Assembly: GCA_964247055.1 (NCBI GenBank) | Contig: OZ176055.1 | Coordinates: 9,176,001 to 9,240,000 of the forward strand | Reading direction: 5' to 3' | Length of the DNA stretch: 64,000 nucleotides | DNA from: Paragordius varius | Lineage: Eukaryota; Animalia; Nematomorpha | In this document: positions 12,560 to 64,000 of the stretch, one piece after another | Numbering within the stretch: the first letter of the stretch is position 1 | How the letters are laid out: each line of letters begins with the position of its first letter | Position numbers and translations under genes: made by a program | The notes under the pieces: generated by a model | The model's database searches: none | Told to the model about the DNA's origin: nothing | The model's input: the letters and a program-made list of their open reading frames with translations, nothing else

Positions 12560-13900
12560 CGGTTCTTCATCCAACTAGAGTTGGAGAAATATCCAATTCT
12601 TTATTTCTTCAACCAACAGAGTTGGAGAAATATCCATTTCTTTATTTCTTCATCCAACAACAGTTGGAGAAATATCCCTTTCTCCATTTTCTTATCTAAC
12701 AAGAGTTGAAAAAATTTCCAAGAGTTGGAAAAATATCCCGGCCACCGGTTCTCCATCCAACACGAGTTGGATAGATATTCCTCTATATTTTTCCATTTGT
12801 AAATCCAAAGAGTTTGATAAATATCCAAGATTTGTATATTCCGTTTTCTACTTATTCTCCAACAAAAGTTGGAGAAAATCCCTTTCTTCATTTTTTCATT
12901 CAACAAGAGTTGAAGAAATATGCCGTTTTTTATTTCTTCCATAAAAAAGAGTTGAAAAAATATGCCATTCTCCATTTATTCATCCAACAATAGTTGGAGA
13001 AATATCCTGTTTTCCAATTCTTCTCCACAAAGATTTGGAGATCTCCCTTTCTCCCCTTTTTCATCCAACAAGAGTTGAATAGATTTCCGAGAATTGGAGA
13101 AATATCCACTTCTCTTGTTCTGCATCCAAACGCAAAGAAATATCCAGTTTCTCATTATAGTTGGGAAAATTTAGAGTTTTCACGTTTTTCACCGACAAGG
13201 AGTTTGAGAAAAACACTTTCTTCATTTAATCCTTCAACAAGAGTTAGAAAAACATTCCTTTCTACATTTTTACATCCAACAAGAGTTGGAGAAATTGGCC
13301 GTTTTGCATTTCTTCTTGCAAAAAGAGCTAGAGAGTTAGAGAAAATCCCTTTATGCATTTCTTTATTCAACAAGAGTTGGGAAAATATCCGGTTCTTCAT
13401 TTGTCCATCCAACAAAAGTTGGAGAAATATTTAAGAGTTGGAGATATATTCCTTTTTCCTTTACCTCATTCATCAAGAGTTCGAGAAATATGCTGTTTTC
13501 CATTTCTTCATCCAACAAAAGTTGAATAGATTTCCAATAATTCAGAGAAATATCCCGTTCTCGTATTCTTCATTCAACGCGATAATGCCGGTCTCCATTT
13601 CTTTATCTTCAACAAAAGTTGTAATCCAAGAGTAATTTATCCCACTCTATTTCTTCATCCAACAAAAGTTGAATAAATTTCCAAGAATTGGAAAGATATC
13701 CCGTTCTTCAGCCAACACGAGTTGGATAAATATTCCTTTCTCCATTTCTTCTTCCGACATTTTTTCACCCAACAAAAGTTGGAGAAATAACCTAATTAGA
13801 GATTTATCCCTTTCTCCATGTCTTCATCCAACAAGAGTTAAAGAAATATGCCGTTTTCCAATTCTTCCTCAAACAAGAGTTAAATAATATTGTCAACGAG
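12560..13900 (+). repeat. Diverged 5' halo of the 42-bp satellite (module 1)
   Basis: Recurring TCCAAC-N4-GTTGGAGAAATAT cores (N4 usually AAGA/AAAA) separated by variable TC-rich linkers. Confidence 0.85.
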
Positions 13901-13915
13901 AACGAATATTTTATG

Positions 13916-14679
13916 TTAAAATAATAATTTGAATTCTCGTGAAATTTATTAAATTAAACTATCCAAAATTTTCGATACATGGGAGTATCTTTTTCAATGG
14001 ATTAACTACAACAAAAGAAAATAATAATACGATATAATTAAAACATTTGAAAAAAATATAATTATAAATTATGATAACAAAAAAATGCAAAGTGTATGTC
14101 CATGTGTTATTGTTTTTTTCTTGGAGTGGTAATTATTTTAAAGTAATCTGTTTCTTTTAAGAAGTCTTTTGTAACTTTGTTAAGTTCTTTCCTCTCTTCT
14201 CTTCTGTTGATGAGATGTATAATATAGAGCGCTGGACAATCATTACATTTTTTGTGGCAGACGGTACATTCTTTTTTAGTTTCTCGGCGTGGTCTTAAAA
14301 AACTTAATAGATTCTTTGGTGGTTTGTAATAAGCATGTACATCGTTTTCTGTTATAATGTTAATTTTTTTGGATGTATTGTTATAAGTCAGGCACATACA
14401 TCTTTCGGGCGGATTTTGCCTTTCTCTTGGGTTTAATATATTGTTTAATGAAAGAAACAGATTAAAGTATTTACCACTCCAAGAAAAAAACAATAACACA
14501 TAGACACACACTTTGCATTTTTTTGTTATCATAATTTATAATTATATTTTTTCAAATTTTGTTTTAATTATATATTATTTTCTTTTGTTTTAGTTAATCC
14601 ATTTAAAAGATACTCCCATGTATCGAAAATTTTGGATATAATTTAATAAATTTTATGAGAATTCAAATTATTATTTTAA
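13916..14679. mobile_element. Foldback/MITE-like element with ~240-bp inverted arms, bounded by TTAA (copy 1)
   Basis: The left arm TTAAAATAATAATTTGAATTCTC... (13916 to ~14157) is the reverse complement of the right arm (~14451-14679, ...GAGAATTCAAATTATTATTTTAA). The core is ~290 bp. Confidence 0.85.
14107..14532 (-). pseudogene. Cys/His-rich ORF inside the foldback; resembles a piggyBac C-terminal Cys-rich domain remnant
   Basis: Contains HAYYKPP...RPRRETKKECTVCHKKCNDCPALYII. The same segment persists in copy 2 (47783-47977) despite a nearby deletion. The family assignment is from motif resemblance only. Confidence 0.35.
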
Positions 14680-14699
14680 GTTAAATAAATATACCATTA

Positions 14700-15015
14700 T
14701 CCATTTTTTCATCCAACTAGAGTTCGAGAAACATGCCGTTTTCCATTTCTTTATCCAACATAAGTTGGATAAATATTCAAGAGTTGGAAATATACCCCTA
14801 TCTCCATTTCTTCATCCACAAAGAGTAGAAATCCCTTTCTCCATTTCCTCATCCAAGAGTTTATAGAAATATTCCATTCTCCATTTATTTATCCAATAAG
14901 AGTTAGATAGTTGGAGAGATCTCCATTTCTCCCTTTTTTCATCCAACGAGAGTTTAATAGATTTCCAAGAATCTGAGAAATAGCCACTTCTCTTGTTCTT
15001 CAGTCAAACGCAAAG
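14700..15015 (+). repeat. Short block of diverged satellite monomers between the foldback and the array
   Basis: Homologous to 48300-48625; contains TCCAAC..GTTGGA cores. Confidence 0.8.
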
Positions 15016-18000
15016 AAATATCCAATTCTTTTCTTCATCCAACTATAATTGGAGAAATATCCAATTCTTCTTTTCTTCATCCAACTCCAGTTGGAGAAAT
15101 ATCCAATTCTTCATTTCTTCATCCAACTCCAGTTGGAGAAATATCCAATTCTTCTTTTCTTCATTCAACTCCAGTTGGAGAAATATCCAATTCTTCTTTT
15201 CTTCATCCAACTCCAGTTAGAGAAATATCCAATTCTTCATTTCTGCATCCAACTCCAGTTGGAGAAATATCCAATTCTCCATTTCTTCATCCAAATACAG
15301 TTGGAGAAATATCCAATTCTTCTTTTCTTCATCCAACTCCAGTTGAAGAAATATCCAATTCTCCATTTCTTCATCCAAATACAGTTGGAGAAATATCCAA
15401 TTCTTCTTTTCTTCATCCAACTCCAGTTGGAGAAATATCCAATTCTTCATTTCTTCATCCAACTCCAGTTGGAAAAGTATCCAATTCTTCTTTTCTTCAT
15501 CCAACTCCAGTTGGAGAAATATCCAATTCTTCTTTTCTTCATCCAACTCCAGTTGGAGAAATATCCAATTCTCCATTTCTTCATCCAAATACAGTTGGAG
15601 AAATATCCAATTCTTCTTTTCTTCATCCAACTCCAGTTGGAGAAATATCCAATTCTTCATTTCTGCATCCAACTCCAGTTGGAGAAATATCCAATTCTCC
15701 ATTTCTTCATCCAAATACAGTTGGAGAAATATCCAATTCTTCTTTTCTTCATCCAACTCCAGTTGGAGAAATATCCAATTCTTCATTTCTTCATCCAACT
15801 CCAGTTGGAAAAGTATCCAATTCTTCTTTTCTTCATCCAACTCCAGTTGGAGAAATATCCAATTCTTCTTTTCTTCATCCAACTCCAGTTGGAGAAATAT
15901 CCAATTCTCCATTTCTTCATCCAAATACAGTTGGAGAAATATCCAATTCTTCTTTTCTTCATCCAACTCCAGTTGGAGAAATATCCAATTCTTCATTTCT
16001 GCATCCAACTCCAGTTGGAGAAATATCCAATTCTCCATTTCTTCATCCAAATACAGTTGGAGAAATATCCAATTCTTCTTTTCTTCATCCAACTCCAGTT
16101 GGAGAAATATCCAATTCTTCTTTTCTTCATCCAACTCCAGTTGGAGAAATATCCAATTCTCCATTTCTTCATCCAAATACAGTTGGAGAAATATCCAATT
16201 CTTCTTTTCTTCATCCAACTCCAGTTGGAGAAATATCCAATTCTTCATTTCTGCATCCAACTCCAGTTGGAGAAATATCCAATTCTCCATTTCTTCATCC
16301 AAATACAGTTGGAGAAATATCCAATTCTTCTTTTCTTCATCCAACTCCAGTTGGAGAAATATCCAATTCTTCATTTCTTCATCCAACTCCAGTTGGAAAA
16401 GTATCCAATTCTTCTTTTCTTCATCCAACTCCAGTTGGAGAAATATCCAATTCTCCATTTCTTCATCCAAATACAGTTGGAGAAATATCCAATTCTTCTT
16501 TTCTTCATCCAACTCCAGTTGGAGAAATATCCAATTCTTCATTTCTGCATCCAACTCCAGTTGGAGAAATATCCAATTCTTCATTTCTTCATCCAACTCC
16601 AGTTGGAGAAATATCCAATTCTTCTTTTCTTCATCCAACTCCAGTTGGAGAAATATCCAATTCTTCTATTCTTCATCCAACTCCAGTTGGAGAAATATCC
16701 AATTCTTCATTTCTGCATCCAACTCCAGTTGGAGAAATATCCAATTCTTCATTTCTTCATCCAACTCCAGTTGGAGAAATATCCAATTCTTCATTTCTTC
16801 ATCCAACTCCAGTTGGAGAAATATCCAATTCTCCATTTCTTCATCCAAATACAGTTGGAGAAATATCCAATTCTTCTTTTCTTCATCCAACTCCAGTTGG
16901 AGAACAATCTTCATTTCTTCATCCAACTCCAGTTGGAGAAATATCCAATTCTTCTTTTCTTCATCCAACTCCAGTTAGAGAAATATCCAATTCTTCATTT
17001 CTTCATCCAAATACAGTTGGAGAAATATCCAATTCTTCATTTCTTCATCCAACTTCAGTTGGAGAAATATACAATTCTTCATTTCTTCATCCAACTCCAG
17101 TTGGAGAAATATCCAATTCTTCTTTTCTTCATCCAACTCCAGTTGGAGAAATATCCAATTCTTCATTTCTGCATCCAACTCCAGTTGGAGAAATATCCAA
17201 TTCTTCATTTCTTCATCCAACTCCAGTTGGAGAAATATCCAATTCTTCTTTTCTTCATCCAACTCCAGTTGGAGAAATATCCAATTCTTCATTTCTTCAT
17301 CCAACTCCAGTTGGAGAAATATCCAATTCTTCATTTCTTCATCCAACTTCAGTTGGAGAAATATACAATTCTTCATTTCTTCATCCAACTCCAGTTGGAG
17401 AAATATCCAATTCTTCTTTTCTTCATCCAACTCCAGTTGGAGAAATATCCAATTCTTCATTTCTTCATCCAACTCCAGTTGGAAAAGTATCCAATTCTTC
17501 TTTTCTTCATCCAACTCCAGTTGGAGAAATATCCAATTCTTCATTTCTTCATCCAACTCCAGTTGGAAAAGTATCCAATTCTTCTTTTCTTCATCCAACT
17601 CCAGTTGGAGAAATATCCAATTCTTCATTTCTTCATCCAACTCCAGTTGGAGAAATATCCAATTCTTCATTTCTTCATCCAACTCCAGTTGGAAAAGTAT
17701 CCAATTCTTCTTTTCTTCATCCAACTCCAGTTGGAGAAATATCCAATTCTTCTTTTCTTCATCCAACTCCAGTTGGAGAAATATCCAATTCTTCTATTCT
17801 TCATCCAACTCCAGTTGGAGAAATATCCAATTCTTCTTTTCTTCATCCAACTCCAGTTGGAGAAATATCCAATTCTTCATTTCTTCATCCAACTCCAGTT
17901 GGAAAAGTATCCAATTCTTCTTTTCTTCATCCAACTCCAGTTGGAGAAATATCCAATTCTTCATTTCTTCATCCAACTCCAGTTGGAGAAATATCCAATT

Positions 18001-21000
18001 CTTCTATTCTTCATCCAACTCCAGTTGGAGAAATATCCAATTCTTCATTTCTGCATCCAACTCCAGTTGGAGAAATATCCAATTCTTCTTTTCTTCATCC
18101 AACTCCAGTTGGAGAAATATCCAATTCTTCTTTTCTTCATCCAACTCCAGTTGGAGAAATATCCAATTCTTCTTTTCTTCATCCAACTACAGTGGAGAAA
18201 TATCCAATTCTTCTTTTCTTCATCCAACTCCAGTTGGAGAAATATCCAATTCTTCTTTTCTTCATCCAACTACAGTTGGAGAAATATCCAATTCTTCTTT
18301 TCTTCATCCAACTCCAGTTGGAGAAATATCCAATTCTTCTTTTCTTCATCCAACTCCAGTTGGAGAAATATCCGATTCTTCATTTCTTCATCCAACTCCA
18401 GTTGGAGAAATATCCAATTCTTCATTTCTTCATCCAACTCCAGTTGGAGAAATATCCGATTCTTCATTTCCTCATCCAACTCCAGTTGGAGAAACATCCA
18501 ATTCTTCATTTCCTCATCCAACTCCAGTTGGAGAAATATCCGATTCTTCATTTCTTCATCCAACTCCAGTTGGAGAAACATCCAATTCTTCATTTCCTCA
18601 TCCAACTCCAGTTGGAGTAATATCCAATTCTTCATTTCTGCATCCAACTCCAGTTGGAGTAATATCCAATTCTTCATTTCTTCATCCAACTCCAGTTGGA
18701 GTAATATCCAATTCTTCATTTCTTCATCCAACTCCAGTTGGAGAAACATCCAATTCTTCATTTCTGCATCCAACTAGAGTTGGAGAAATATCCGATTCTT
18801 CATTTCTTCATCCAACTCCAGTTGGAGAAACATCCAATTCTTCATTTCCTCATCCAACTCCAGTTGGAGTAATATCCAATTCTTCTTTTCTTCATCCAAC
18901 TCCAGTTGGAGAAATATCCAATTCTTCTTTTCTTCATCCAACTACAGTTGGAGAAATATCCACTTCTTCATTTCTTCATCTAAATCCAGTTGAAGGAATA
19001 TCCAATTCTTCTTTTCTTCATCCAACTCCAGTTGGAGAAATATCCAATTCTTCATTTCTTCATCCAACTCCAGTTGGAGAAATATCCGATTCTTCATTTC
19101 TTCATTCAACTACAGTTGGAGAAATATCCGATTCTTCATTTCTGCATCCAACTAGAGTTGGAGAAATATCCAATTCTTCATTTCTTCATCCAACTCCAGT
19201 TGGAGAAATATCCAATTCTTCATTTCTTCATCCAACTCCAGTTGGAGAAATATCCGATTCTTCATTTCCTCATCCAACTCCAGTTGGAGAAACATCCAAT
19301 TCTTCATTTCCTCATCCAACTCCAGTTGGAGAAATATCCGATTCTTCATTTCTTCATCCAACTCCAGTTGGAGAAACATCCAATTCTTCATTTCCTCATC
19401 CAACTCCAGTTGGAGTAATATCCAATTCTTCATTTCTGCATCCAACTCCAGTTGGAGTAATATCCAATTCTTCATTTCTTCATCCAACTCCAGTTGGAGT
19501 AATATCCAATTCTTCATTTCCTCATCCAACTCCAAATGGAGAAATATCCGATTCTTCATTTCCTCATCCAACTCCAGTTGGAGAAATATCCGATTCTTCT
19601 TTTCTTCATCCAACTACAGTTGGAGAAATATCCACTTCTTCATTTCTTCATCTAAATCCAGTTGAAGGAATATCCAATTCTTCTTTTCTTCATCCAACTC
19701 CAGTTGGAGAAATATCCAATTCTTCTTTTCTTCATCCAACTACAGTTGGAGAAATATCCACTTCTTCATTTCTTCATCTAAATCCAGTTGAAGGAATATC
19801 CAATTCTTCTTTTCTTCATCCAACTCCAGTTGGAGAAATATCCAATTCTTCATTTCTTCATCCAACTCCAGTTGGAGAAATATCCGATTCTTCATTTCTT
19901 CATTCAACTACAGTTGGAGAAATATCCGATTCTTCATTTCTGCATCCAACTAGAGTTGGAGAAATATCCAATTCTTCATTTCTTCATCCAACTCCAGTTG
20001 GAGAAATATCCGATTCTTCATTTCCTCATCCAACTCCAGTTGGAGAAACATCCAATTCTTCATTTCCTCATCCAACTCCAGTTGGAGTAATATCCAATTC
20101 TTCATTTCTGCATCCAACTCCAGTTGGAGTAATATCCAATTCTTCATTTCTTCATCCAACTCCAGTTGGAGTAATATCCAATTCTTCATTTCCTCATCCA
20201 ACTCCAAATGGAGAAATATCCGATTCTTCATTTCCTCATCCAACTCCAGTTGGAGAAATATCCGATTCTTCTTTTCTTCATCCAACTACAGTTGGAGAAA
20301 TATCCACTTCTTCATTTCTTCATCTAAATCCAGTTGAAGGAATATCCAATTCTTCTTTTCTTCATCCAACTCCAGTTGGAGAAATATCCAATTCTTCTTT
20401 TCTTCATCCAACTACAGTTGGAGAAATATCCACTTCTTCATTTCTTCATCTAAATCCAGTTGAAGGAATATCCAATTCTTCTTTTCTTCATCCAACTCCA
20501 GTTGGAGAAATATCCAATTCTTCATTTCTTCATCCAACTCCAGTTGGAGAAATATCCGATTCTTCATTTCTTCATTCAACTACAGTTGGAGAAATATCCG
20601 ATTCTTCATTTCTGCATCCAACTAGAGGAGAAATATCCAATTCTTCATTTCTTCATCCAACTCCAGTTGGAGAAATATCCAATTCTTCATTTCTTCATCC
20701 AACTCCAGTTGGAGAAATATCCGATTCTTCATTTCCTCATCCAACTCCAGTTGGAGAAACATCCAATTCTTCATTTCCTCATCCAACTCCAGTTGGAGAA
20801 ATATCCGATTCTTCATTTCTTCATCCAACTCCAGTTGGAGAAACATCCAATTCTTCATTTCCTCATCCAACTCCAGTTGGAGTAATATCCAATTCTTCAT
20901 TTCTGCATCCAACTCCAGTTGGAGTAATATCCAATTCTTCATTTCTTCATCCAACTCCAGTTGGAGTAATATCCAATTCTTCATTTCTTCATCCAACTCC

Positions 21001-24000
21001 AGTTGGAGAAACATCCAATTCTTCATTTCTGCATCCAACTAGAGTTGGAGAAATATCCGATTCTTCATTTCTTCATCCAACTCCAGTTGGAGAAACATCC
21101 AATTCTTCATTTCCTCATCCAACTCCAGTTGGAGTAATATCCGATTCTTCATTTCCTCATCCAACTCCAAATGGAGAAATATCCGATTCTTCATTTCCTC
21201 ATCCAACTCCAGTTGGAGAAATATCCGATTCTTCATTTCTGCATCCAACTAGAGTTGGAGAAATATCCAATTCTTCATTTCTTCATCCAACTCCAGTTGG
21301 AGTAATATCCAATTCTTCATTTCTTCATCCAACTCCAGTTGGAGTAATATCCAATTCTTCATTTCTGCATCCAACTAGAGTTGGAGAAATATCCAATTCT
21401 TCATTTCTGCATCCAACTAGAGTTGGAGAAATATCCGATTCTTCATTTCTTCATCCAACTCCAGTTGGAGAAACATCCAATTCTTCATTTCCTCATCCAA
21501 CTCCAGTTGGAGTAATATCCGATTCTTCATTTCCTCATCCAACTCCAAATGGAGAAATATCCGATTCTTCATTTCTTCATCCAACTCCAGTTGGAGAAAT
21601 ATCCGATTCTTCATTTCCTCATCCAACTCCAGTTGGAGAAATATCCGATTCTTCATTTCTGCATCCAACTAGAGTTGGAGAAATATCCAATTCTTCATTT
21701 CTTCATCCAACTCCAGTTGGAGAAATATCCGATTCTTCATTTCCTCATCCAACTCCAGTTGGAGAAATATCCGATTCTTCATTTCTTCATCCAACTCCAG
21801 TTGGAGAAATATCCGATTCTTCATTTCTTCATCCAACTACAGTTGGAGAAATATCCGATTCTTCATTTCTGCATCCAACTAGAGTTGAAGAAATATCCGA
21901 TTCTTCATTTCTTCATCCAACTCCAGTTGGAGAAACATCCAATTCTTCATTTCCTCATCCAACTCCAGTTGGAGTAATATCCGATTCTTCATTTCCTCAT
22001 CCAACTCCAGTTGGAGAAATATCCGATTCTTCATTTCCTCATCCAACTCCAAATGGAGAAATATCCGATTCTTCATTTCTTCATCCAACTCCAGTTGGAG
22101 TAATATCCGATTCTTCATTTCTTCATCCAACTACAGTTGGAGAAATATCCGATTCTTCATTTCTGCATCCAACTAGAGTTGGAGAAATATCCGATTCTTC
22201 ATTTCCTCATCCAACTCCAAATGGAGAAATATCCGATTCTTCATTTCTTCATCCAACTCCAGTTGGAGAAATATCCAATTCTTCATTTCTTCATCCAACT
22301 CCAGTTGGAGAAATATCCGATTCTTCATTTCTGCATCCAACTAGAGTTGGAGAAATATCCGATTCTTCATTTCCTCATCCAACTCCAAATGGAGAAATAT
22401 CCGATTCTTCATTTCTTCATCCAACTCCAGTTGGAGAAATATCCAATTCTTCATTTCTTCATCCAACTCCAGTTGGAAAAATATCCAATTCTTCATTTCT
22501 TCATCCAACTCCAGTTGGAGAAATATCCAATTCTTCTTTTCTTCATCCAACTCCAGTTGGAGAAATATCCGATTCTTCATTTCTGCATCCAACTCCAAAT
22601 GGAGAAATATCCGATTCTTCATTTCTTCATCCAACTCCAGTTGGAGAAATATCCAATTCTTCTTTTCTTCATCCAACTCCAGTTGGAGTAATATCCGATT
22701 CTTCATTTCCTCATCCAACTCCAAATGGAGAAATATCCGATTCTTCATTTCTTCATCCAAATACAGTTGGAGAAATATCCAATTCTTCATTTCTTCATCC
22801 AACTCCAGTTGGAGAAATATCCGATTCTTCATTTCTGCATCCAACTCCAAATGGAGAAATATCCAATTCTTCATTTCTTCATCCAACTACAGTTGGAGAA
22901 ATATTCAATTCTTCATTTCTTCATCCAACTACAGTTGGAGAAATATTCAATTCTTCATTTCTTCATCCAACTACAGTTGAAGAAATATCCAATTCTTCTA
23001 TTCTTCATCCAACTACAGTTGGAGAAATATTCAATTCTTCATTTCTTCATCCAACTACAGTTGGAGAAATATTCAATTCTTCATTTCTTCATCCAACTAC
23101 AGTTGGAGAAATATTCAATTCTTCATTTCTTCATCCAACTACAGTTGGAGAAATATTCAATTCTTCATTTCTTCATCCAACTACAGTTGGAGAAATATTC
23201 AATTCTTCATTTCTTCATCCAACTACAGTTGAAGAAATATTCAATTCTTCATTTATTCATCCAACTACAGTTGAAGAAATATCCAATTCTTCATTTCTTC
23301 ATCCAACTACAGTTGAAGAAATATTCAATTCTTCATTTCTTCATCCAACTACAGTTGGAGAAATATTCAATTCTTCATTTCTTCATCCAACTACAGTTGA
23401 AGAAATATCCAATTCTTCTATTCTTCATCCAACTACAGTTGGAGAAATATCCAATTCTTCTATTCTTCATCCAACTACAGTTGGAGAAATATTCAATTCT
23501 TCATTTCTTCATCCAACTCCAGTTGGAGAAATATTCAATTCTTCATTTCTTCATCCAACTACAGTTGGAGAAATATTCAATTCTTCATTTCTTCATCCAA
23601 CTACAGTTGGAGAAATATTCAATTCTTCTATTCTTCATCCAACTACAGTTGGAGAAATATTCAATTCTTCATTTCTTCATCCAACTACAGTTGGAGAAAT
23701 ATCCAATTCTTCTATTCATCCAACTACAGTTGGAGAAATATTCAATTCTTCATTTCTTCATCCAACTCCAGTTGGAGAAATATTCAATTCTTCATTTCTT
23801 CATCCAACTACAGTTGGAGAAATATTCAATTCTTCATTTCTTCATCCAACTCCAGTTGGTGAAATATCCGATTCTTCATTTCCTCATCCAACTCCAAATG
23901 GAGAAATATCCGATTCTTCATTTCTTCATCCAACTCCAGTTGGAGAAATATCCAATTCTTCATTTCTTCATCCAACTCCAGTTGGAGAAATATCCGATTC

Positions 24001-38545: not shown

Positions 38546-38559
38546 CTCTTCTTTTAATT

Positions 38560-47575: not shown

Positions 47576-47593
47576 GAGAACGAATATATCATG

Positions 47594-48289: not shown

Positions 48290-48299
48290 GTTAAATAAA

Positions 48300-51800: not shown

Positions 51801-54800
51801 CAGTTGGAGAAATATCCAATTCTTCTTTTCTTCATCCAACTCCAGTTGGAGAAATATCCAATTCTTCATTTCTTCATCCAACTCCAGTTGGAGAAATATC
51901 CAATTCTTCTTTTCTTCATCCAACTCCAGTTGGAGAAATATCCAATTCTTCATTTCTTCATGCAACTCCAGTTGGAGAAATTTCCAATTCTTCTTTTCTT
52001 CATCCAACTCCAGTTGGAGAAATTTCCAATTCTTCATTTCTTCATTCAACTCTTGTTGGAGAAATTACCAATTCTAATTTTCTTCATCCAACTCCAGTTG
52101 GAGAAATATCCAATTCTTCATTTCTTCATCCAACTCCAGTTGGAGAAATATCCAATTCTTCATTTCTTCATCCAACTCTTGTTGGAGAAATATCCAATTC
52201 TTCATTTCTTCATCCAACTCTTGTTGGAGAAATATCCAATTCTTCATTTCTTCCTCCAACTCTTGTTGGAGAAATATCCAATTCTTCTTTTCTTCATCCA
52301 ACACCAGTTGGAGAAATATCCAATTCTTCATTTCTTCATCCAACTCCAGTTGGAGAAATTTCCAATTCTTCTTTTCTTCATCCAACTCCAGTTGGAGAAA
52401 TATCCAATTCTTCATTTCTTCATGCAACTCCAGTTGGAGAAATTTCCAATTCTTCTTTTCTTCATCCAACTCCAGTTGGAGAAATTTCCAATTCTTCATT
52501 TCTTCATCCAACTCTTGTTGGAGAAATTACCAATTCTTCTTTTCTTCATCCAACTCCAGTTGGAGAAATATCCAATTCTTCATTTCTTCATCCAACTCTT
52601 GTTGGAGAAATATCCAATTCTTCATTTCTTCATCCAACTCTTGTTGGAGAAATATCCAATTCTTCATTTCTTCCTCCAACTCTTGTTGGAGAAATATCCA
52701 ATTCTTCTTTTCTTCATCCAACTCCAGTTGGAGAAATATCCAATTCTTCATTTCTTCATCCAACTCCAGTTGGAGAAATATCCAATTCTTCATTTCTTCA
52801 TCCAACTCCAGTTGGAGAAATTTCCAATTCTTCTTTTCTTCTTCCAACTCCAGTTGGAGAAATATCCAATTCTTCATTTCTTCATCCAACTCCAGTTGGA
52901 GAAATATCCAATTCTTCATTTCTTCATCCAACTCCAGTTGGAGAAATTTCCAATTCTTCATTTCTTCATCCAACTCCAGTTGGAGAAATATCCAATTCTT
53001 CATTTCTTCATCCAACTCCAGTTGGAGAAATATCCAATTCTTCATTTCTTCATCCAACTCTTGTTGAGAAATATCCAATTCTTCATTTCTTCATCCAACT
53101 CTTGTTGGAGAAATATCCAATTCTTCATTTCTTCATCCAACTCCAGTTGGAGAAATATCCAATTCTTCATTTCTTCATCCAACTCCAGTTGGAGAAATAT
53201 CCAATTCTTCTTTTCTTCATCCAACTCCAGTTGGAGAAATATCCAATTCTTCTTTTCTTCATCCAACTCCAGTTGGAGAAATATCCAATTCTTCTTTTCT
53301 TCATCCAACTCCAGTTGGAGAAATATCCAATTCTTCTTTTCTTCATCCAACTCCAGTTGGAGAAATATCCAATTCTTCTTTTCTTCATCCAACTCCAGTT
53401 GGAGAAATATCCAATTCTTCATTTCTTCATCCAACTCCAGTTGGAGAAATTTCCAATTCTTCATTTCTTCATCCAACTCTTGTTGGAGAAATTACCAATT
53501 CTTCTTTTCTTCATCCAACTCCAGTTGGAGAAATATCCAATTCTTCATTTCTTCATCCAACTCCAGTTGGAGAAATATCCAATTCTTCATTTCTTCATCC
53601 AACTCTTGTTGGAGAAATATCCAATTCTTCATTTCTTCATCCAACTCTTGTTGGAGAAATATCCAATTCTTCATTTCTTCCTCCAACTCGTGTTGGAGAA
53701 ATATCCAATTCTTCTTTTCTTCATCCAACTCCAGTTGGAGAAATATCCAATTCTTCATTTCTTCATCCAACTCCAGTTGGAGAAATATCCAATTCTTCAT
53801 TTCTTCATCCAACTCCAGTTGGAGAAATTTCCAATTCTTCTTTTCTTCATCCAACTCCAGTTGGAGAAATATCCAATTCTTCATTTCTTCATCCAACTCC
53901 AGTTGGAGAAATATCCAATTCTTCATTTCTTCATCCAACTCCAGTTGGAGAAATTTCCAATTCTTCTTTTCTTCATCCAACTCCAGTTGGAGAAATATCC
54001 AATTCTTCATTTCTTCATCCAACTCCAGTTGGAGAAATATCCAATTCTTCTTTTCTTCATCCAACTCCAGTTGTAGAAATATCCAATTCTTCTTTTCTTC
54101 ATCCAACTCCAGTTGGAGAAATATCCAATTCTTCATTTCTTCATCCAACTCCAGTTGGAGAAATATCCAATTCTTCATTTCTTCATCCAACTCCAGTTGG
54201 AGAAATATCCAATTCTTCTTTTCTTCATCCAACTCCAGTTGGAGAAATATCCAATTCTTCATTTCTTCATCCAACTCTTGTTGAGAAATATCCAATTCTT
54301 CATTTCTTCATCCAACTCTTGTTGGAGAAATATCCAATTCTTCATTTCTTCATCCAACTCCAGTTGGAGAAATATCCAATTCTTCATTTCTTCATCCAAC
54401 TCCAGTTGGAGAAATATCCAATTCTTCTTTTCTTCATCCAACTCCAGTTGGAGAAATATCCAATTCTTCTTTTCTTCATCCAACTCCAGTTGGAGAAATA
54501 TCCAATTCTTCATTTCTTCATCCAACTCCAGTTGGAGAAATATCCAATTCTTCTTTTCTTCATCCAACTCCAGTTGGAGAAATATCCAATTCTTCTTTTC
54601 TTCATCCAACTCCAGTTGGAGAAATATCCAATTCTTCTTTTCTTCATCCAACTCCAGTTGGAGAAATATCCAATTCTTCTTTTCTTCATCCAACTCCAGT
54701 TGGAGAAATATCCAATTCTTCTTTTCTTCATCCAACTCCAGTTGGAGAAATATCCAATTCTTCATTTCTTCATCCAACTCCAGTTGGAGAAATATCCAAT

Positions 54801-57800
54801 TCTTCTTTTCTTCATCCAACTCCAGTTGGAGAAATATCCAATTCTTCATTTCTTCATGCAACTCCAGTTGGAGAAATTTCCAATTCTTCTTTTCTTCATC
54901 CAACTCCAGTTGGAGAAATTTCCAATTCTTCATTTCTTCATTCAACTCTTGTTGGAGAAATTACCAATTCTAATTTTCTTCATCCAACTCCAGTTGGAGA
55001 AATATCCAATTCTTCATTTCTTCATCCAACTCCAGTTGGAGAAATATCCAATTCTTCATTTCTTCATCCAACTCTTGTTGGAGAAATATCCAATTCTTCA
55101 TTTCTTCATCCAACTCTTGTTGGAGAAATATCCAATTCTTCATTTCTTCCTCCAACTCTTGTTGGAGAAATATCCAATTCTTCTTTTCTTCATCCAACAC
55201 CAGTTGGAGAAATATCCAATTCTTCATTTCTTCATCCAACTCCAGTTGGAGAAATTTCCAATTCTTCTTTTCTTCATCCAACTCCAGTTGGAGAAATATC
55301 CAATTCTTCATTTCTTCATGCAACTCCAGTTGGAGAAATTTCCAATTCTTCTTTTCTTCATCCAACTCCAGTTGGAGAAATTTCCAATTCTTCATTTCTT
55401 CATCCAACTCTTGTTGGAGAAATTACCAATTCTTCTTTTCTTCATCCAACTCCAGTTGGAGAAATATCCAATTCTTCATTTCTTCATCCAACTCTTGTTG
55501 GAGAAATATCCAATTCTTCATTTCTTCATCCAACTCTTGTTGGAGAAATATCCAATTCTTCATTTCTTCCTCCAACTCTTGTTGGAGAAATATCCAATTC
55601 TTCTTTTCTTCATCCAACTCCAGTTGGAGAAATATCCAATTCTTCATTTCTTCATCCAACTCCAGTTGGAGAAATATCCAATTCTTCATTTCTTCATCCA
55701 ACTCCAGTTGGAGAAATTTCCAATTCTTCTTTTCTTCTTCCAACTCCAGTTGGAGAAATATCCAATTCTTCATTTCTTCATCCAACTCCAGTTGGAGAAA
55801 TATCCAATTCTTCATTTCTTCATCCAACTCCAGTTGGAGAAATTTCCAATTCTTCATTTCTTCATCCAACTCCAGTTGGAGAAATATCCAATTCTTCATT
55901 TCTTCATCCAACTCCAGTTGGAGAAATATCCAATTCTTCATTTCTTCATCCAACTCTTGTTGAGAAATATCCAATTCTTCATTTCTTCATCCAACTCTTG
56001 TTGGAGAAATATCCAATTCTTCATTTCTTCATCCAACTCCAGTTGGAGAAATATCCAATTCTTCATTTCTTCATCCAACTCCAGTTGGAGAAATATCCAA
56101 TTCTTCTTTTCTTCATCCAACTCCAGTTGGAGAAATATCCAATTCTTCTTTTCTTCATCCAACTCCAGTTGGAGAAATATCCAATTCTTCTTTTCTTCAT
56201 CCAACTCCAGTTGGAGAAATATCCAATTCTTCTTTTCTTCATCCAACTCCAGTTGGAGAAATATCCAATTCTTCTTTTCTTCATCCAACTCCAGTTGGAG
56301 AAATATCCAATTCTTCATTTCTTCATCCAACTCCAGTTGGAGAAATATCCAATTCTTCATTTCTTCATCCAACTCTTGTTGGAGAAATATCCAATTCTTC
56401 TTTTCTTCATCCAACTCCAGTTGGAGAAATATCCAATTCTTCATTTCTTCATCCAACTCCAGTTGGAGAAATATCCAATTCTTCATTTCTTCATCCAACT
56501 CCAGTTGGAGAAATATCCAATTCTTCATTTCTTCATCCAACTCCAGTTGGAGAAATATCCAATTCTTCTTTTCTTCATCCAACTCCAGTTGGAGAAATAT
56601 CTAATTCTTCATTTCTTCATCCAACTCCAGTTGGAGAAATATCCAATTCTTCATTTCTTCATCCAACTCCAGTTGGAGAAATATCCAATTCTTCATTTCT
56701 TCATCCAACTCCAGTTGGAGAAATATCCAATTCTTCTTTTCTTCATCCAACTCCAGTTGGAGAAATATCCAATTCTTCATTTCTTCATCCAACTCCAGTT
56801 AGAGAAATATCCAATTCTTCATTTCTTCATCCAACGCCAGTTGGAGAAATATCTAATTCTTCTTTTCTTCATCCAACTCCAGTTGAAGAAATATCCAATT
56901 CTTCATTTCTTCATCCAACTATAATTGGAGAAATATCCAATTCTCCATTTCTTCATCCAATTTCAGTTGGAGAAATATCCAATTCTTCATTTCTTCATCC
57001 AACTACAGTTGGAGAAATATCCAATTCTTCTTTTCTTCATCCAACTCCAGTTGGAGAAATATCCAATTCTTCATTTCTTCATCCAACTCCAGTTGGAGAA
57101 ATATCCAATTCTTCTTTTCTTCATCCAACTCCAGTTGGAGAAATATCCAATTCTTCTTTTCTTCATCCAACTCCAGTTGGAGAAATATCCAATTCTTCAT
57201 TTCTTCATCCAACTCCACTTGGAGAAATATCCAATTCTTCAATTCTTCATCCAATTTCAGTTGGAGAAATATCCAATTCTTCATTTCTTCATCCAACTAC
57301 AGTTGGAGAAATATCCAATTCTTCTTTTCTTCATCCAACTCCAGTTGGAGAAATATCCAATTCTTCATTTCTTCATCCAACTCCAGTTGGAGAAATATCC
57401 AATTCTTCTTTTCTTCATCCAACTCCAGTTGGAGAAATATCCAATTCTTCTTTTCTTCATCCAACTCCAGTTGGAGAAATATCCAATTCTTCATTTCTTC
57501 ATCCAACTCCACTTGGAGAAATATCCAATTCTTCAATTCTTCATCCAACTACAGTTGGAGAAATATCCAATTCTTCATTTCTTCATCCAACTACAGTTGG
57601 AGAAATATCCAATTCTTCAATTCTTCATCCAACTCCAGTTGGAGAAATATCCAATTCTTCATTTCGTCATCCAACTCCAGTTGGAGAAATATCCAATTCT
57701 TCTTTTCTTTATCCAACTCCAGTTGGAGAAATATCCAATTCTTCATTTCGTCATCCAACTCCAGTTGGAGAAATATCCAATTCTTCTTTTCTTCATCCAA

Positions 57801-60800
57801 CTCCAGTTGGAGAAATATACAATTCTTCTTTTCTTCATCCAACTCCAGTTGGAAAAATATGCATTTCATCATCCAACTTTAGTTGGAGAAATATCCAATT
57901 CTTCTTTTCTTCATCCAACTTCAGTTGGTGAAATATCCAATTCTTCATTTCTTCATCCAACTACAGTTGGAGAAATATCCAATTCTTCATTTCTTCATCC
58001 AACTCCAGTTGGAGAAATATCCAATTCTTCATTTCTTCATCCAACTCCAGTTGGAGAAATATCCAATTCTTCATTTCTTCATCCAACTCCAGTTGGAGAA
58101 ATATCCAATTCTTCTTTTATTCATCCAACTCCAGTTGGAGAAATATCCAATTCTTCATTTCTTCATCCAACTTCAGTTGGAGAAATATCCAATTCTTCAT
58201 TTCTTCATCCAACTACAGTTGGAGAAATATCCAATTCTTCTTTTCTTCATCCAACTCCAGTTGGAGAAATATCCAATTCTTCATTTCTTCATCCAACTCC
58301 ACTTGGAGAAATATCCAATTCTTCAATTCTTCATCCAACTACAGTTGGAGAAATATCCAATTCTTCATTTCTTCATCCAACTACAGTTGGAGAAATATCC
58401 AATTCTTCATTTCTTCATCCAACTACAGTTGGAGAAATATCCAATTCTTCAATTCTTCATCCAACTCCAGTTGGAGAAATATCCAATTCTTCTTTTCTTC
58501 ATCCAACTCCAGTTGGAGAAATATACAATTCTTCTTTTATTCATCCAACTCCAGTTGGAAAAATATGCATTTCATCATCCAACTTTAGTTGGAGAAATAT
58601 CCAATTCTTCTTTTCTTCATCCAACTTCAGTTGGTGAAATATCCAATTCTTCATTTCTTCATCCAACTACAGTTGGAGAAATATCCAATTCTTCATTTCG
58701 TCATCCAACTCCAGTTGGAGAAATATCCAATTCTTCTTTTCTTCATCCAACTCCAGTTGGAGAAATATACAATTCTTCTTTTCTTCATCCAACTCCAGTT
58801 GGAAAAATATGCATTTCATCATCCAACTTTAGTTGGAGAAATATCCAATTCTTCTTTTCTTCATCCAACTTCAGTTGGTGAAATATCCAATTCTTCATTT
58901 CTTCATCCAACTACAGTTGGAGAAATATCCAATTCTTCATTTCTTCATCCAACTCCAGTTGGAGAAATATCCAATTCTTCATTTCTTCATCCAACTCCAG
59001 TTGGAGAAATATCCAATTCTTCTTTTATTCATCCAACTCCAGTTGGAGAAATATCCAATTCTTCATTTCTTCATCCAACTTCAGTTGGAGAAATATCCAA
59101 TTCTTCATTTCTTCATCCAACTACAGTTGGAGAAATATCCAATTCTTCTTTTCTTCATCCAACTCCAGTTGGAGAAATATCCAATTCTTCATTTCTTCAT
59201 CCAACTCCACTTGGAGAAATATCCAATTCTTCAATTCTTCATCCAACTACAGTTGGAGAAATATCCAATTCTTCAATTCTTCATCCAACTACAGTTGGAG
59301 AAATATCCAATTCTTCATTTCTTCATCCAACTCCAGTTGGAGAAATATCCAATTCTTCTTTTCTTCATCCAACTCCAGTTGGAGAAATATCCAATTCTTC
59401 ATTTCTTCATCCAACTCCACTTGGAGAAATATCCAATTCTTCAATTCTTCATCCAACTACAGTTGGAGAAATATCCAATTCTTCAATTCTTCATCCAACT
59501 CCACTTGGAGAAATATCCAATTCTTCATTTCTTCATCCAACTACAGTCGGAGAAATATCCAATTCTTCATTTCTTCATCCAACTCCAGTTGGAGAAATAT
59601 CCAATTCTTCTTTTATTCATCCAACTCCAGGAGAAATATCCCTTTCTTCTTTTCTTCATCCAACTCCAGTTGGAGAAATATCTAATTCTTCTTTTATTCA
59701 TCCAACTACATTTGGAGAAATATCCAATTCTTCATTTCTTCATCCAACTCCAGTTGGAGAAATATCCAATTCTTCATTTCTTCATCCAACTCCAGTTGGA
59801 GAAATATCCAATTCTTCTTTTATTCATCCAACTCCAGTTGGAGAAATATCCAATTCTTCATTTCTTCATCCAACTTCAGTTGGAGAAATATCCAATTCTT
59901 CATTTCTTCATCCAACTACAGTCGGAGAAATATCCAATTCTTCATTTCTTCATCCAACTCCAGTTGGAGAAATATCCAATTCTTCTTTTATTCATCCAAC
60001 TCCAGTTGGAGAAATATCCCTTTCTTCTTTTCTTCATCCAACTCCAGTTGGAGAAATATCCAATTCTTCTTTTATTCATCCAACTACATTTGGAGAAATA
60101 TCCAATTCTTCATTTCTTCATCCAACTCCAGTTGGAGAAATATCCAATTCTTCATTTCTTCATCCAACTCCAGTTGGAGAAATATCCGATTCTTCTTTTA
60201 TTCATCCAACTCCAGTTGGAGAAATATCCAATTCTTCAATTCTTCATCCAACTTCAGTTGGAGAAATATCCGATTCTTCATTTCTTCATCCAACTACAGT
60301 TGGAGAAATATCCAATTCTTCATTTCTTCATCCAACTCCAGTTGGAGAAATATCCAATTCTTCATTTCTTCATCCAACTCCAGTTGGAGAAATATCCAAT
60401 TCTTCAATTCTTCATCCAACTACAGTTGGAGAAATATCCAATTCTTCTTTTCTTCATCCAACTCCAGTTGGAGAAATATCCAATTCTTCTTTTATTCATC
60501 CAACTCCAGTTGGAAAAATATCCAATTCTTCTTTTCATCCAACTCCAGTTGGAAAAATATCCAATTCTTCATTTCTTCATCCAACTCCAGTTGGAGAAAT
60601 ATCCAATTCTTCATTTCTTCATCCAACTCCAGTTGGAGAAATATCCAATTCTTCTTTTCTTCATCCAACTCCAGTTGGAGAAATATCCAATTCTTCTTTT
60701 ATTCATCCAACTCCAGTTGGAGATATATCCAATTCTTCTTTTATTCATCCAACTACATTTGGAGAAATATCCAATTCTTCTTTTATTCATCCAACTCCAG

Positions 60801-62144
60801 TTGGAAAAATATCCAATTCTTCTTTTCATCCAACTCCAGTTGGAAAAATATCCAATTCTTCATTTCTTCATCCAACTCCAGTTGGAGAAATATCCAATTC
60901 TTCATTTCTTCATCCAACTCCAGTTGGAGAAATATCCAATTCTTCTTTTATTCATCCAACTCCAGTTGGAGATATATCCAATTCTTCTTTTATTCATCCA
61001 ACTACATTTGGAGAAATATCCAATTCTTCTTTTATTCATCCAACTCCAGTTGGAAAAATATCCAATTCTTCTTTTCATCCAACTCCAGTTGGAAAAATAT
61101 CCAATTCTTCATTTCTTCATCCAACTCCAGTTGGAGAAATATCCAATTCTTCTTTTCTTCATCCAACTCCAGTTGGAGATATATCCAATTCTTCTTTTAT
61201 TCATCCAACTCCAGTTGGAGATATATCCAATTCTTCTTTTATTCATCCAACTACATTTGGAGAAATATCCAATTCTTCTTTTATTCATCCAACTCCAGTT
61301 GGAAAAATATCCAATTCTTCTTTTCATCCAACTCCAGTTGGAAAAATATCCAATTCTTCATTTCTTCATCCAACTCCAGTTGGAGAAATATCCAATTCTT
61401 CATTTCTTCATCCAACTCCAGTTGGAGAAATATCCAATTCTTCATTTCTTCATCCAACTCCAGTTGGAGAAATATCCAATTCTTCATTTCTTCATCCAAC
61501 TCCAGTTGGAGAAATATCCCTTTCTTCTTTTCTTCATCCAACTCCAGTTGGAGAAATATCCAATTCTTCATTTCTTCATCCAACTCCAGTTGGAGAAATA
61601 TCCAATTCTTCTTTTCTTCATCCAACTCCAGTTGGAGAAATATCCAATTCTTCATTTCTTCATCCAACTCCAGTTGGAGAAATATCCAATTCTTCTTTTC
61701 ATCCAACTCCAGTTGGAAAAATATCCAATTCTTCATTTCATCCAACTCCAGTTGGAAAAATATCCAATTCTTCATTTCTTCATCCAACTACAGTTGGAGA
61801 AATATCCCTTTCTTCTTTTCTTCATCCAACTCCAGTTGGAGAAATATCCAATTCTTCTTTTCATCCAACTCCAGTTGGAAAAATATCCAATTCTTCATTT
61901 CTTCATCCAACTCCAGTTGGAGAAATATCCAATTCTTCATTTCTTCATCCAACTCCAGTTGGAGAAATATCCAATTCTTCTTTTCTTCATCCAACTCCAG
62001 TTGGAGAAATATCCAATTCTTCTTTTCTTCATCCAACTCCAGTTGGAGAAATATCCAATTCTTCATTTATTCATCCAACTCCAGTTGGAGAAATATCCAA
62101 TTCTTCTTTTCTTCATCCAACTAGAGTTGGATAAATATCCAATT
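48872..62144 (+). repeat. 42-bp tandem satellite array 2 (~13.3 kb, ~315 monomers)
   Basis: Same consensus as array 1 with a different set of variants; contains a 2896-bp higher-order duplication. Confidence 0.99.
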
Positions 62145-64000
62145 TCCCATTTATTTCATACGTTAACAGATATTTGATTATATTTACAGGTATGCGAACT
62201 ATCCATTTATCTAACAACATAATCAAATTTTAAGCAACTGAAAAAATGTCCAAATCTGTTTAACAAGTTATCTTTGTCCGATTTTAATGTTAGTTCAATT
62301 CCACTTTCTTCTATATCCTCCTTAATAATTAGAGGTAACCAGATCCTCATTATGCATCCGTTCAATTATTTCGATTTAATATTAAGATGTATCGATCATC
62401 AATTGTCATTAACTCTTTAAATATTTAACCATGTTTCCATTTTTTATTTTAGAAGCGTTTAAAATTTATTATACTGACTCAAGCCATATTTCGAAAATAT
62501 CAATTATAAAAAAATAATTTTTTATAAATAATTTACATAAGATAACACAATTACATAATATTATTAAAAATTATATTGGTTCATAGAAAGCATAACTTTA
62601 GAAAGTAAAATCATGTATCATGCAAATGAAATGCATAAACAAGTCATAATTATTAATTAAAGATAAAGCCCATTTATCCGAGTCCATTACAAATTTAGCG
62701 ATGGGATTCGAAAAGTAAGCTGTTTAATTTTTAATGATATACATTAATGTATATAGCAGTCGTTATTAAAATTAAAAAATTATTGAATCGATTTAATCAT
62801 ATCATAGATTTGCACTTAGATTTGAGCGGTGAAAGTTATTTAATAAAACGTAATGTGTTGCAGAATAGTTCCTGGGTTTATAAACTTCGGTATAAATTTT
62901 ACGTTTACGACTTTACCACTTCAAGCTTCACCTACATTAATGGATAATTCTTTATTAACAAAGGTCGATGGAATTGGTGTCTACCTTACAGAATCACCCA
63001 ATCCCTTTTCCTCTGAATCAGAATATTTATTAACTCGAGTATTTATTCAAATCCATTTATAAGATTTCAAATTTCGGATCTTTATACGCCTTTAATTATT
63101 TTTGTTCATGAGTGTTCAAAGTTTTCAACGTTCATTAATGTTTGTTAACTGAAGCTTGTAAATTAAAAGTTTCTTAACAGAAATCCGGATAAGCACCGAT
63201 AGTTTTTACTTTTATATCTGTGTAATCTCCTCTTTAAATGATTGTCCAAAGATTAACAAAGTTTTGTCTTTTATTTCGATATGAGTTAAAGGTCTCCAAA
63301 ATCTACATAATATCTGTTAAACAATTTTAGTTGTTTATAAAGAGAGGTTAAATACTGTAATGATCGTCTTTCAGGCATAAAATATTAAGGACAAAATCTT
63401 CTTAGGATTTGTTTTATCCAGAATGTAACACTATGAAACATAATCTTCAAATGTTATATTTGGATAAAAACTGCGAGGTTACAGTGATTTTAGTTATTAT
63501 TTATTGACTCTACTTTTATAAATATTATATCCGACAATAAATGCTTCACTATTTAAATCATTTATTTGATGAAGTTATATCATTGCTATATTATTGTGAA
63601 TATACTTTGTTTAGACTGAATCATCAGTCAGCACAGTTCGTGTTAAGAATTTCCATGTTAGTCCCCTTATTTCGTTTACAGTGGTTACATATTCAAAGTT
63701 GTTAATATATGGTTGATTTTTAAAGATGAGATACCCATACTTCTATACATTATTAAGAGATGTCAAATTTTTAATAATTTAAAGCTGTAATATTCTTCCG
63801 TGTTGGTTTCCATATTATATAGTTTGAAATTATATGTTTAAATAAAAAATGCATTTATTATTATATATACAAATTTTAATATGCATACATACATAAATAA
63901 GTATAATATATGTGAATATCGTTGCGATTAATTTATTTGTATACATTAAAATTTGGTAATTAAATATTAATATACATAAAAATTTTGTTATATAAAAAAT
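62145..64000. repeat. 3' flank of module 2, paralogous to 33911-35490; runs off the window
   Basis: Collinear with flank 1, with an extra ~150-bp segment at ~62660-62815. Confidence 0.92.

Follow-up and report, generated by a model that had tools for sequence, protein, structure and literature searches.

The window, by which we mean the whole 64,000-nucleotide stretch of Paragordius varius DNA analysed here, contains two direct copies of one module, in which a halo of degenerate repeats, a foldback, a short diverged block, an array of a 42-bp monomer and a right flank follow one another in that order. The features, with their positions in the window, are listed below.

12563-13884, plus strand: halo of copy 1, degenerate 42/49-bp relatives of the satellite (TRF)
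13885-14679, minus strand: foldback of copy 1, apparently a degenerate Penelope-like retroelement made up of an arm, a centre and an inverted arm
14680-15013, plus strand: short block of copy 1, diverged monomers that separate the retroelement from the homogeneous array
15014-33919, plus strand: array 1, ~450 copies of the 42-bp monomer (TRF)
33920-37337, plus strand: right flank of copy 1 (self-BLAST and copy comparison)
35050-35291, no strand assigned: near-invariant 242-bp block inside the copy 1 flank, with its copy 2 counterpart at 63589-63830
37497-38307, minus strand: old MITE copies (585-bp, TTAA-flanked), with a matching arrangement beyond the copy 3 flank
38320-38584, plus strand: young MITE, 95% identical to its family, 5' end intact after TTAA
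38585-44300, plus strand: upstream segment U of copy 2, 5.7 kb, starting within the ICMT gene
38585-39580, plus strand: ICMT pseudogene, 5'-truncated and frameshifted (PF04140 matches, exon comparison)
40025-42629, minus strand: retroelement private to copy 2, with an 11-bp TSD and an A-rich tail; copy 3 has the empty site
44360-47562, plus strand: halo of copy 2, degenerate 42/60-bp repeats (TRF)
47563-48289, minus strand: apparent Penelope-like remnant of copy 2, sharing the copy 1 insertion site but with a 72-bp deletion of its own
48290-48870, plus strand: short diverged block of copy 2 (self-BLAST and copy comparison)
48871-62144, plus strand: array 2, ~317 copies of the 42-bp monomer (TRF)
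62145-64000, plus strand: right flank of copy 2, part (a) only, continuing to ~64915 (~0.9 kb past the window end) and followed by unique DNA

The sequence-only reading of this DNA had described the same order of parts twice in the same orientation, and this is borne out by TRF together with self-BLAST, which aligned 13475-15013 with 47126-48620 at 90-96% and 33938-35435 with 62184-63969 at 80-90%, both in the same orientation, confirming that the non-array parts are paralogous (80-96%). The inverted arms of the foldback, 13916-14141 and 14679-14462, paired with each other. Measured at the foldback, copy 2 is offset from copy 1 by 33,678 bp; measured at the flank, the offset is 28,246 bp. These values agree with the ~33.6 and ~28.2 kb given earlier, and the gap between the two is the difference in length between arrays 1 and 2. 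Copies 1 and 2 also have longer flanks than had been described, copy 2 has the 5.7-kb segment U, and there is a third, inverted copy.

This third copy lies at C6:9,317,984-9,340,887, 83 kb past the window copies, with an identical part order, so that the module comprises three copies of 22-26 kb each within 165 kb of a single chromosome. In a search of the 110-Mb genome, the satellite, the halo, the right flank and segment U were confined to C6:9.188-9.341 Mb: the right flank occurs three times, each time adjoining an array, segment U occurs twice, and the halo has no occurrence outside this region of C6. The three copies diverge by 6-16%: their retroelement regions are 91-94% identical and their flanks 84-88%, and for U the identity is 88.7% (copy 2 versus copy 3). 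The housekeeping genes ATP23 and RPL27A are located between copies 2 and 3, and housekeeping genes are found within 11-15 kb to either side as well as between copies. Rfam at the gathering threshold and a tRNA search returned nothing in the whole window, and a literature search gave no match for '42-bp satellite'. A ciliate germline origin was rejected, as the HSP70 genes show long open frames in the standard code.

The satellite arrays and their flanks

A 34-mer of the monomer, searched genome-wide with up to 2 mismatches, matched 698 times in forward orientation, always in the window, and 137 times in reverse, always in the third array, and the satellite amounts to 41 kb in total on one chromosome only. 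The monomer consensus is identical across all three arrays, and the array-to-flank junction has one monomer phase in all three copies. Nonetheless, 127 of the 135 monomer types are private to a single array and only three are common to all, which upholds the earlier proposal that the array interiors turned over independently. In array 2, moreover, a 2,896-bp unit recurs ~2.5 times in tandem with 98-100% identity, at roughly 50.1-57.4 kb; in a base-by-base autocorrelation, higher-order periods were blurred by indels. Because both array edges, the junction phase and the retroelement insertion are common to all copies, the arrays were inherited: they came along with the duplications and then diverged independently, without re-seeding.

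TRF detected degenerate 42/49/60-bp repeats to the left of both window arrays. The left edge of the copy 1 halo is abrupt and falls mid-monomer against unique DNA at 12562/12563, and nothing left of 12560 is paralogous to any sequence in the region. The short block of copy 1 is 96-98% identical to that of copy 2 and is absent in copy 3. Neither the halo ORFs nor the neighbouring ORFs matched a Pfam family, apart from the one noted below.

On the right, part (a) of the copy 1 flank, to 36418, is common to the three copies, and part (b), 36419-37337, has its counterpart in copy 3 alone; homology reaches 37337 and then continues to about 38319. Within part (a), the 242-bp block shows 3-4 differences between any two copies (~98.5% identity), compared with 80-90% identity in its surroundings. 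It contains no ORF and no Rfam match at E-value thresholds, and RNA folding z-scores of -0.6 and -0.3 for the two strands gave no structure signal. Such near-invariance is not predicted by a purely neutral history.

The foldback and its family

In copy 1 the foldback lies between direct repeats of GTTAAA, and joining its flanks restores one degenerate monomer; in all copies the retroelement occupies this one insertion site between GTTAAA repeats. It belongs to a dispersed family with at least 60 loci that lack the satellite. A 518-aa ORF in a 4.2-kb family member matched RVT_1 of Pfam (E = 3e-12), with weaker matches in three other members, and a CCHH motif could be read by eye in the 518-aa protein (VY, CxxC, YIGQ, R, EH, HCxxxGH), although Pfam gave no GIY-YIG match. 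Neighbour clusters in the Atlas carry RVT_1 and GIY-YIG, with PF01541 in 23% of members. Several family loci contain head-to-head pairs with ORFs reading outward, and their long and short ends differ by ~33 bp. The window copies are ~0.8-kb remnants that have lost the RT part. The Cys/His ORF of the foldback (141 aa, 14107-14532, minus strand), which is absent from copies 2 and 3, has no family in Pfam, and the foldback gave no Rfam match at E-value thresholds. This ORF appears to be the remnant of a putative GIY-YIG/CCHH endonuclease, and probably represents the native C-terminal end of the RT-endonuclease protein after an in-frame loss of 57 aa.

Penelope-like elements have a C-terminal GIY-YIG endonuclease, occur as 5'-truncated inverted or tandem copies (pseudo-LTRs) and carry a 30-40-bp tail at one end (PMC8557442). 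The family described here resembles them in a protein whose RT precedes a putative GIY-YIG core, where two Cys separate the GIY and YIG motifs and a pair of His comes later, and also in its 5'-truncated copies, its inverted repeats derived from an inverted truncated copy, and its ~33-bp tail at one end (PMC8557442). It departs from them in that the window remnants are ~0.8 kb without an RT and in that searches of five family loci (E ≤ 0.1) and of window positions 13400-15100 (E ≤ 1) detected no hammerhead ribozyme, which is weak evidence, as the copies are 5'-truncated. Taken together, the foldback appears to be a degenerate, dead Penelope-like retroelement. It is an independent insertion, older than the duplications, of an inverted pair of 3' ends into a degenerate monomer. 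When the monomer was compared with Penelope-like loci (71 kb) and MITE loci (30 kb), they had only chance 10-12-mers in common.

The copy 2 junction

The young MITE ends at family position ~272, where copy 2 starts, and the 38584/38585 junction carries a 6-bp microhomology, TAATTT (38579-38584), common to the MITE consensus, copy 2 and copy 3; microhomology was readable at this one junction only. Exon 1 of ICMT and open ICMT exons are present only beside copy 3, and copy 2 begins after exon 1. The retroelement private to copy 2 contains an APE-domain ORF (40478-40960, minus strand) that matched Exo_endo_phos, the sole Pfam match among the foldback, halo and neighbouring ORFs tested. Single-copy DNA abuts the end of the copy 2 flank and the left end of copy 1, and where copy 3 ends on its U side the adjoining ~1.5 kb is single-copy too; on the flank side of copy 3, the DNA beyond the old MITEs has no match elsewhere in the 184-kb region.

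Two other accounts were rejected. A mobile unit flanked by MITEs was suggested by the ends of copy 3, which bracket a MITE when mapped to the window, but this MITE is cut short at the junction, and the DNA upstream of copy 3 is unique, with ICMT exon 1 and no MITE. Likewise, had copy 2 simply inserted into a MITE, the missing 3' half would be expected beyond copy 2, where it was not found.

History of the locus and its meaning

The best explanation, to which we assign a probability of about 0.8, is that an old, reticulate local segmental duplication tripled a euchromatic, chromosome-specific satellite locus. The module has the traits of a segmental duplication, namely low copy number, a length of >1 kb, host sequence carried along, arbitrary breakpoints and microhomology, while being older than the conventional 90% cut-off allows. 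An old segmental duplication was one of the two origins proposed in the sequence-only reading, and it stands on the three copies within 165 kb, their differing ends and the microhomology junction that cuts both a MITE and a gene; the accompanying idea that the satellite re-expanded twice does not stand, the arrays having been inherited. The ancestral unit would have consisted of the ICMT gene, ~2 kb of spacer, degenerate repeats with the Penelope-like insertion, a homogeneous array and the right flank, and every duplication would have taken the array along with its flanks. Later unequal exchange within each array may then have kept the consensus while making most variants array-private, and it is this continued turnover that would account for an unchanged consensus with private variants. 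The last event would be copy 2, in which a replication or repair error may have joined the middle of the MITE, a recent insertion in the copy 1 flank, to the interior of ICMT, leaving the 5'-truncated pseudogene.

In the retroelement and the distal flank, copy 2 is most similar to copy 1, whereas over the first 900 bp of the flank its closest match is copy 3. This mosaic similarity probably arose because tracts were swapped among the copies by gene conversion. No single tree fits, and the order of events is therefore uncertain; we tentatively favor an inverted duplication followed by a tandem duplication, which would require two further deletions. An MMBIR/FoSTeS-like replicative mechanism would suit the junction. 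It is also conceivable, if unlikely, that the satellite locus promotes its own local duplication and that the 242-bp block is a selected non-coding element. Arrays of palindromic-core monomers would then stall forks, and the resulting template switches would copy the array and its flanks nearby; if so, the block, as a promoter, boundary element or RNA, would make each copy functional rather than junk.

The other proposed origin, in which the satellite would be seeded by a large mobile unit or by a cassette of centromere type, is not supported; the only dispersed part is the unrelated Penelope-like foldback. A unit of the Helitron, foldback or composite-transposon kind that inserts the array at new sites could draw on that dispersed family, on the MITEs at or near two copy ends and on a part order repeated three times. 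However, there are just three copies, all within 165 kb, and their ends are unlike one another: 12563 in the halo, 38585 inside ICMT and a continuous gene context in copy 3 on the left, while on the right one copy ends at ~64915 and the others past 37337. The search for TSDs and TIRs at the outer ends, suggested earlier, found neither at any module end, the host gene ICMT is cut at one of them, and the monomer has no similarity to the Penelope-like element or the MITE; with at least 60 family loci free of the satellite, we consider this explanation extremely improbable. The pattern suggested earlier for recognizing a simple local duplication is essentially what was found, with foldback and flank together only at these loci and no shared termini. 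It is quite unlikely, too, that one copy arose when recombination between arrays or tandem units released an extrachromosomal circle of array plus flanks that re-integrated nearby. The two ends of copy 3 correspond to points in the window only ~265 bp from each other, with the truncated MITE between them, a circular-permutation pattern such as excision of a unit from a tandem pair would give, and eccDNA has been proposed as a carrier for euchromatic satellites in Tribolium (PMC11610590), but the apparent permutation follows from copy 2 being the junction and requires no circle, and errors of replication or repair would explain microhomology at a single junction just as well. Moreover, because copy 3 has an intact ICMT with exon 1 and unique upstream DNA, it looks like the ancestral context and not like a re-integrated fragment.

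Very little credence is due to an assembly artefact, either a tandem haplotig or a mis-joined satellite. Satellite arrays are difficult to assemble, array 2 repeats its 2,896-bp unit at 100% identity, the locus is different in another sample, some contigs match U from 38579 onwards yet diverge on the opposite side, and, because none of the contigs listed crosses 38584/38585, the long-range arrangement is taken solely from the assembly. Against this, the copies are 6-16% apart and are further set off by numerous indels, by TE insertions and deletions confined to single copies and by monomer variants private to one array, which is far more than alleles would differ within one contig. The unique parts of 36056-40039 are covered by exact-match contigs of run X1 at a uniform ~180-200x, and the third copy is inverted and set apart from the others by genes. 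As for the arrays being a functional chromosomal element, whether centromere-type or a small-RNA-producing cassette, with the 242-bp block as its control element, the near-identity of the block and the identical consensus of three independently turned-over arrays are in its favor. Yet the satellite is limited to 41 kb on a single chromosome with housekeeping genes within 11-15 kb on both sides and between copies, the block has no RNA-family match, ORF or structure signal, and none of the RNA runs contained the sampled words of 33500-43400; we regard such a role as very unlikely and infer that the satellite has no function.

Segmental duplications, or low-copy repeats, can arise by microhomology-mediated errors of replication or repair (FoSTeS/MMBIR). 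The segmental duplication favored here is similar in that its copies lie close together, occur in direct as well as inverted orientation and span tens of kb, in its 6-bp microhomology junction cutting a mobile element and a gene, in the truncated pseudogene it created and in the probable gene conversion between copies afterwards, but differs in that each copy is mostly satellite array and in that the copies, 84-94% identical, are older than the usual 90% cut-off. The internal tandem repeats of foldback and Helitron transposons can grow into satellites, as in Tetris of Drosophila virilis and the Helitron-linked satellites of oysters. Here, too, a foldback element adjoins a tandem array, but the monomer is unrelated to the element, the insertion went into a pre-existing monomer, and the dispersed copies lack the satellite. 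In Tribolium castaneum, Cast1-Cast9 form euchromatic satellite arrays in gene-rich regions with shared flanking sequence (PMC11610590). The locus shares with them arrays of >10 kb in gene-bearing euchromatin, a common array-end sequence on one chromosome, degenerate monomers at array edges and microhomology at junctions (PMC11610590). In contrast with Cast1-Cast9, there are only three arrays in one 165-kb region, with no genome-wide burst, and several kb of flank were copied on both sides, including a fragment of a host gene.

These results caution that a foldback beside an array need not carry the satellite, as here it is only an old Penelope-like insertion, and they remove a candidate for a new class of mobile elements. 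The locus offers a clean, fully readable case of local spread by a young, chromosome-specific satellite that travels as a passenger when its surroundings are segmentally duplicated, after which the copies would diverge by internal turnover while their flanks stay linked by gene conversion.

Three satellite modules on one contig

TRF placed the two 42-bp arrays of the window at 15014-33919 and 48871-62144, with degenerate 42/49/60-bp repeats to the left of both, and self-BLAST confirmed that the non-array parts of copies 1 and 2 are paralogous and in the same orientation, at the offsets claimed in the sequence-only reading (~33.6 kb at the foldback and ~28.2 kb at the flank). We then consider the whole genome (110.6 Mb in 44 contigs), in which the contig C6, carrying all of the modules, accounts for 10.11 Mb; the window is C6:9,176,001-9,240,000, and coordinates above 64000 continue its numbering through the 120 kb of C6 that follow. 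We searched for a 34-mer from the monomer, allowing up to 2 mismatches; it gave 698 forward and 137 reverse matches, and the reversed pattern, used as a control, gave 0. The 698 forward matches all fall in the window, and the 137 reverse ones all fall at C6:9,324,540-9,333,511, where a third array (array 3) lies in inverted orientation, with 217 copies and a 372-bp higher-order period. Exactly three copies of the right flank exist in the genome, every one adjoining an array, and the genome search found no match to the halo, the degenerate satellite relatives left of the array, beyond this region of C6. Copy 3 has its parts reversed (flank, array, foldback, halo) and includes a segment, U, matching window 38585-44300, the DNA immediately upstream of copy 2; the genome has just two copies of U. 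These counts of satellite, flank, halo and U therefore answer the call for a module count across the assembly: the genome has three modules, all of them within 165 kb.

The foldback element and the ends of the copies

Most contigs carry relatives of the foldback (13885-14679): its family occupies 60 or more loci, with identities of 78-92%, and the satellite was never found beside these dispersed copies. Family members elsewhere read arm, 170 bp, centre and, ~600 bp further on, centre, 170 bp, arm in reverse; longer elements reach 4.2 kb and have ORFs pointing outward to each terminus, with RVT_1. The best-preserved member seen is a 4.2-kb head-to-head Penelope-like element on contig C7 (C7:2,024,588-2,028,760), with a 518-aa ORF for RT and a putative GIY-YIG endonuclease at L029:470-2023 (C7:2,027,104-2,028,657). 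The C-terminal end of this ORF reads as a GIY-YIG-type core, in which the GIY-like and YIG motifs enclose two Cys and a His pair follows; the Atlas clusters closest to it consist of animal proteins that carry RVT_1 and GIY-YIG. Endonuclease-positive Penelope-like elements are marked by inverted 5'-truncated copies, pseudo-LTRs, a one-ended 30-40-bp tail and a CCHH motif (PMC8557442); long and short ends of the foldback family differ by ~33 bp, and a search for the hammerhead ribozyme found none in five family loci (E<=0.1) or in window 13400-15100 (E<=1). The Cys/His ORF of the sequence-only reading, open in copy 1 only, is the native C-terminus of the family protein minus 57 aa, in-frame, and this deletion corresponds to a missing 170 bp that is kept in copy 3's element but absent from copies 1 and 2. 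GTTAAA stands as a direct repeat on both sides of the foldback, and when the flanking sequences are joined a single degenerate monomer is recovered; the insertion occupies the same site in all three modules. The monomer has no similarity to the Penelope-like element or to the 585-bp MITE family described below. Thus, the foldback is an ordinary retroelement that inserted into a pre-existing satellite; it is older than the duplications and is not what carries the satellite.

Copy 1 begins mid-monomer at 12563, against unique DNA; a 111-bp unit, present twice at 98% identity, adjoins it on the left (12244-12466). Its flank runs on through old MITE copies, also present in copy 3, and then meets a young MITE copy at 38320-38584. 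The MITE family is 585 bp long and TTAA-flanked, with imperfect inverted ends (examples L062-L071). It numbers thousands of first-look candidates with identities of 91-95%, and C6:9,245,313-9,248,267 contains several nested copies. The young MITE is intact at its 5' end and stops at 38584, family position ~272, where U begins, and six bases at this junction, TAATTT, are common to the MITE consensus, copy 2 and copy 3. U encodes ICMT. The main ICMT gene of the genome lies directly upstream of array 3 (C6:9,339,870-9,341,098, minus strand); its exons are open and it looks intact, and its exon 1 falls beyond the shared segment, in unique DNA. The window ICMT (38585-39580) is a 5'-truncated, frameshifted pseudogene without exon 1. 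A retroelement at 40025-42629 in U is found in copy 2 only, copy 3 having the empty site; it is bounded by an 11-bp TSD, AAGTAGGATAT, and has an A-rich tail; its APE-domain ORF lies on the minus strand, and its internal order appears rearranged. The copy 2 flank ends at ~64915, followed by single-copy DNA; a dispersed element of ~2.25 kb lies just past it (C6:9,242,088-9,244,335; 850 first-look candidates, 84-88% identity). No pair among the three copies has both ends in common, and no TIRs or TSDs were found at their module ends. The proposal of a mobile satellite-carrying unit failed every defining test, and the end pattern is that of segmental duplication.

Divergence, array turnover and a proposed order of events

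In global alignments, identity in the retroelement region was 94.1% between copies 1 and 2, 92.5% between 1 and 3, and 90.9% between 2 and 3; the flank gave 88.4%, 83.9% and 86.4%, respectively, and U gave 88.7% between copies 2 and 3. One block of the flank departs from these averages:

Window 35050-35291: 242-bp block, ungapped, array flank of copy 1
Window 63589-63830: the same block, array flank of copy 2
C6:9,323,022-9,323,263: the same block, beside array 3

The block shows 3-4 differences between copies (~98.5% identical) in surroundings at 80-90%, whereas 28-39 would be expected at the flank's average divergence (P<=5e-9). It has no ORF, Rfam match or fold signal, and reflects either selection or a gene-conversion hot spot.

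At the array-flank boundary the monomer phase is identical in the three copies, and this, together with the common left edge, shows that each copy inherited its array. The three consensus monomers are identical apart from position 35. Three 42-mer types occur in all three arrays and make up 268 of the 885 copies, and 127 of the 135 distinct 42-mers are private to one array. Inside array 2, a 2,896-bp (69-monomer) unit is repeated in tandem ~2.5 times at 98-100% identity (window ~50100-57400), reflecting either unequal exchange in the very recent past or an effect of the assembly. Post-duplication turnover was therefore independent between arrays, as had been proposed from the sequence, and is still ongoing.

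The 170-bp deletion is common to copies 1 and 2. Since the copy 2 junction can only have formed after the young MITE had entered the copy 1 flank, copy 2 is the youngest. In the order we favor, the lineages of copy 3 and of the window would have been split by an inverted duplication, and a direct duplication via a microhomology-mediated switch would have come next; afterwards, copy 1 would have lost U and part of the halo and copy 2 the distal flank, with gene conversion. The flank is itself a mosaic, copy 2 being closest to copy 3 in the first 900 bp and to copy 1 past 35270, and it is possible that copy 2 is a mosaic derived from both older copies.

Read support and genomic setting

Exact contigs from run X1 cover the unique parts of 36056-40039 at ~180-200x; these contigs are short, and none of those listed crosses 38584/5. 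Contigs from X4 (another sample) and X3 (another labelled organism) match U from 38579 on, with dissimilar sequence before that point. Across window 35500-41400 in runs X4 and X3, the same organism's second sample showed SNP divergence of ~3% and very low depth in 36091-36484 and 39440-39833, and this depth and divergence suggest structural polymorphism at the locus. Because read support consists of short contigs only, the long-range structure rests on the assembly. A false duplication in the assembly is nonetheless strongly argued against by the 6-16% divergence of the copies, their private insertions and the inversion of the third.

Outside the arrays, GC content in the window is ~26%. HSP70 genes have long open frames under the standard code, interrupted by introns, and thus mark a eukaryote that uses this code; an animal source is indicated by the APE-type retroelement, the Penelope-like elements and the MITEs. 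ATP23 and RPL27A are located between copies 2 and 3. The locus is gene-bearing euchromatin, a setting in which its arrays resemble the euchromatic satellites of Tribolium (PMC11610590). Of the two alternatives in the sequence-only reading, it is segmental duplication that was borne out, in the form of a local, old, reticulate triplication of a satellite locus, real but ordinary.
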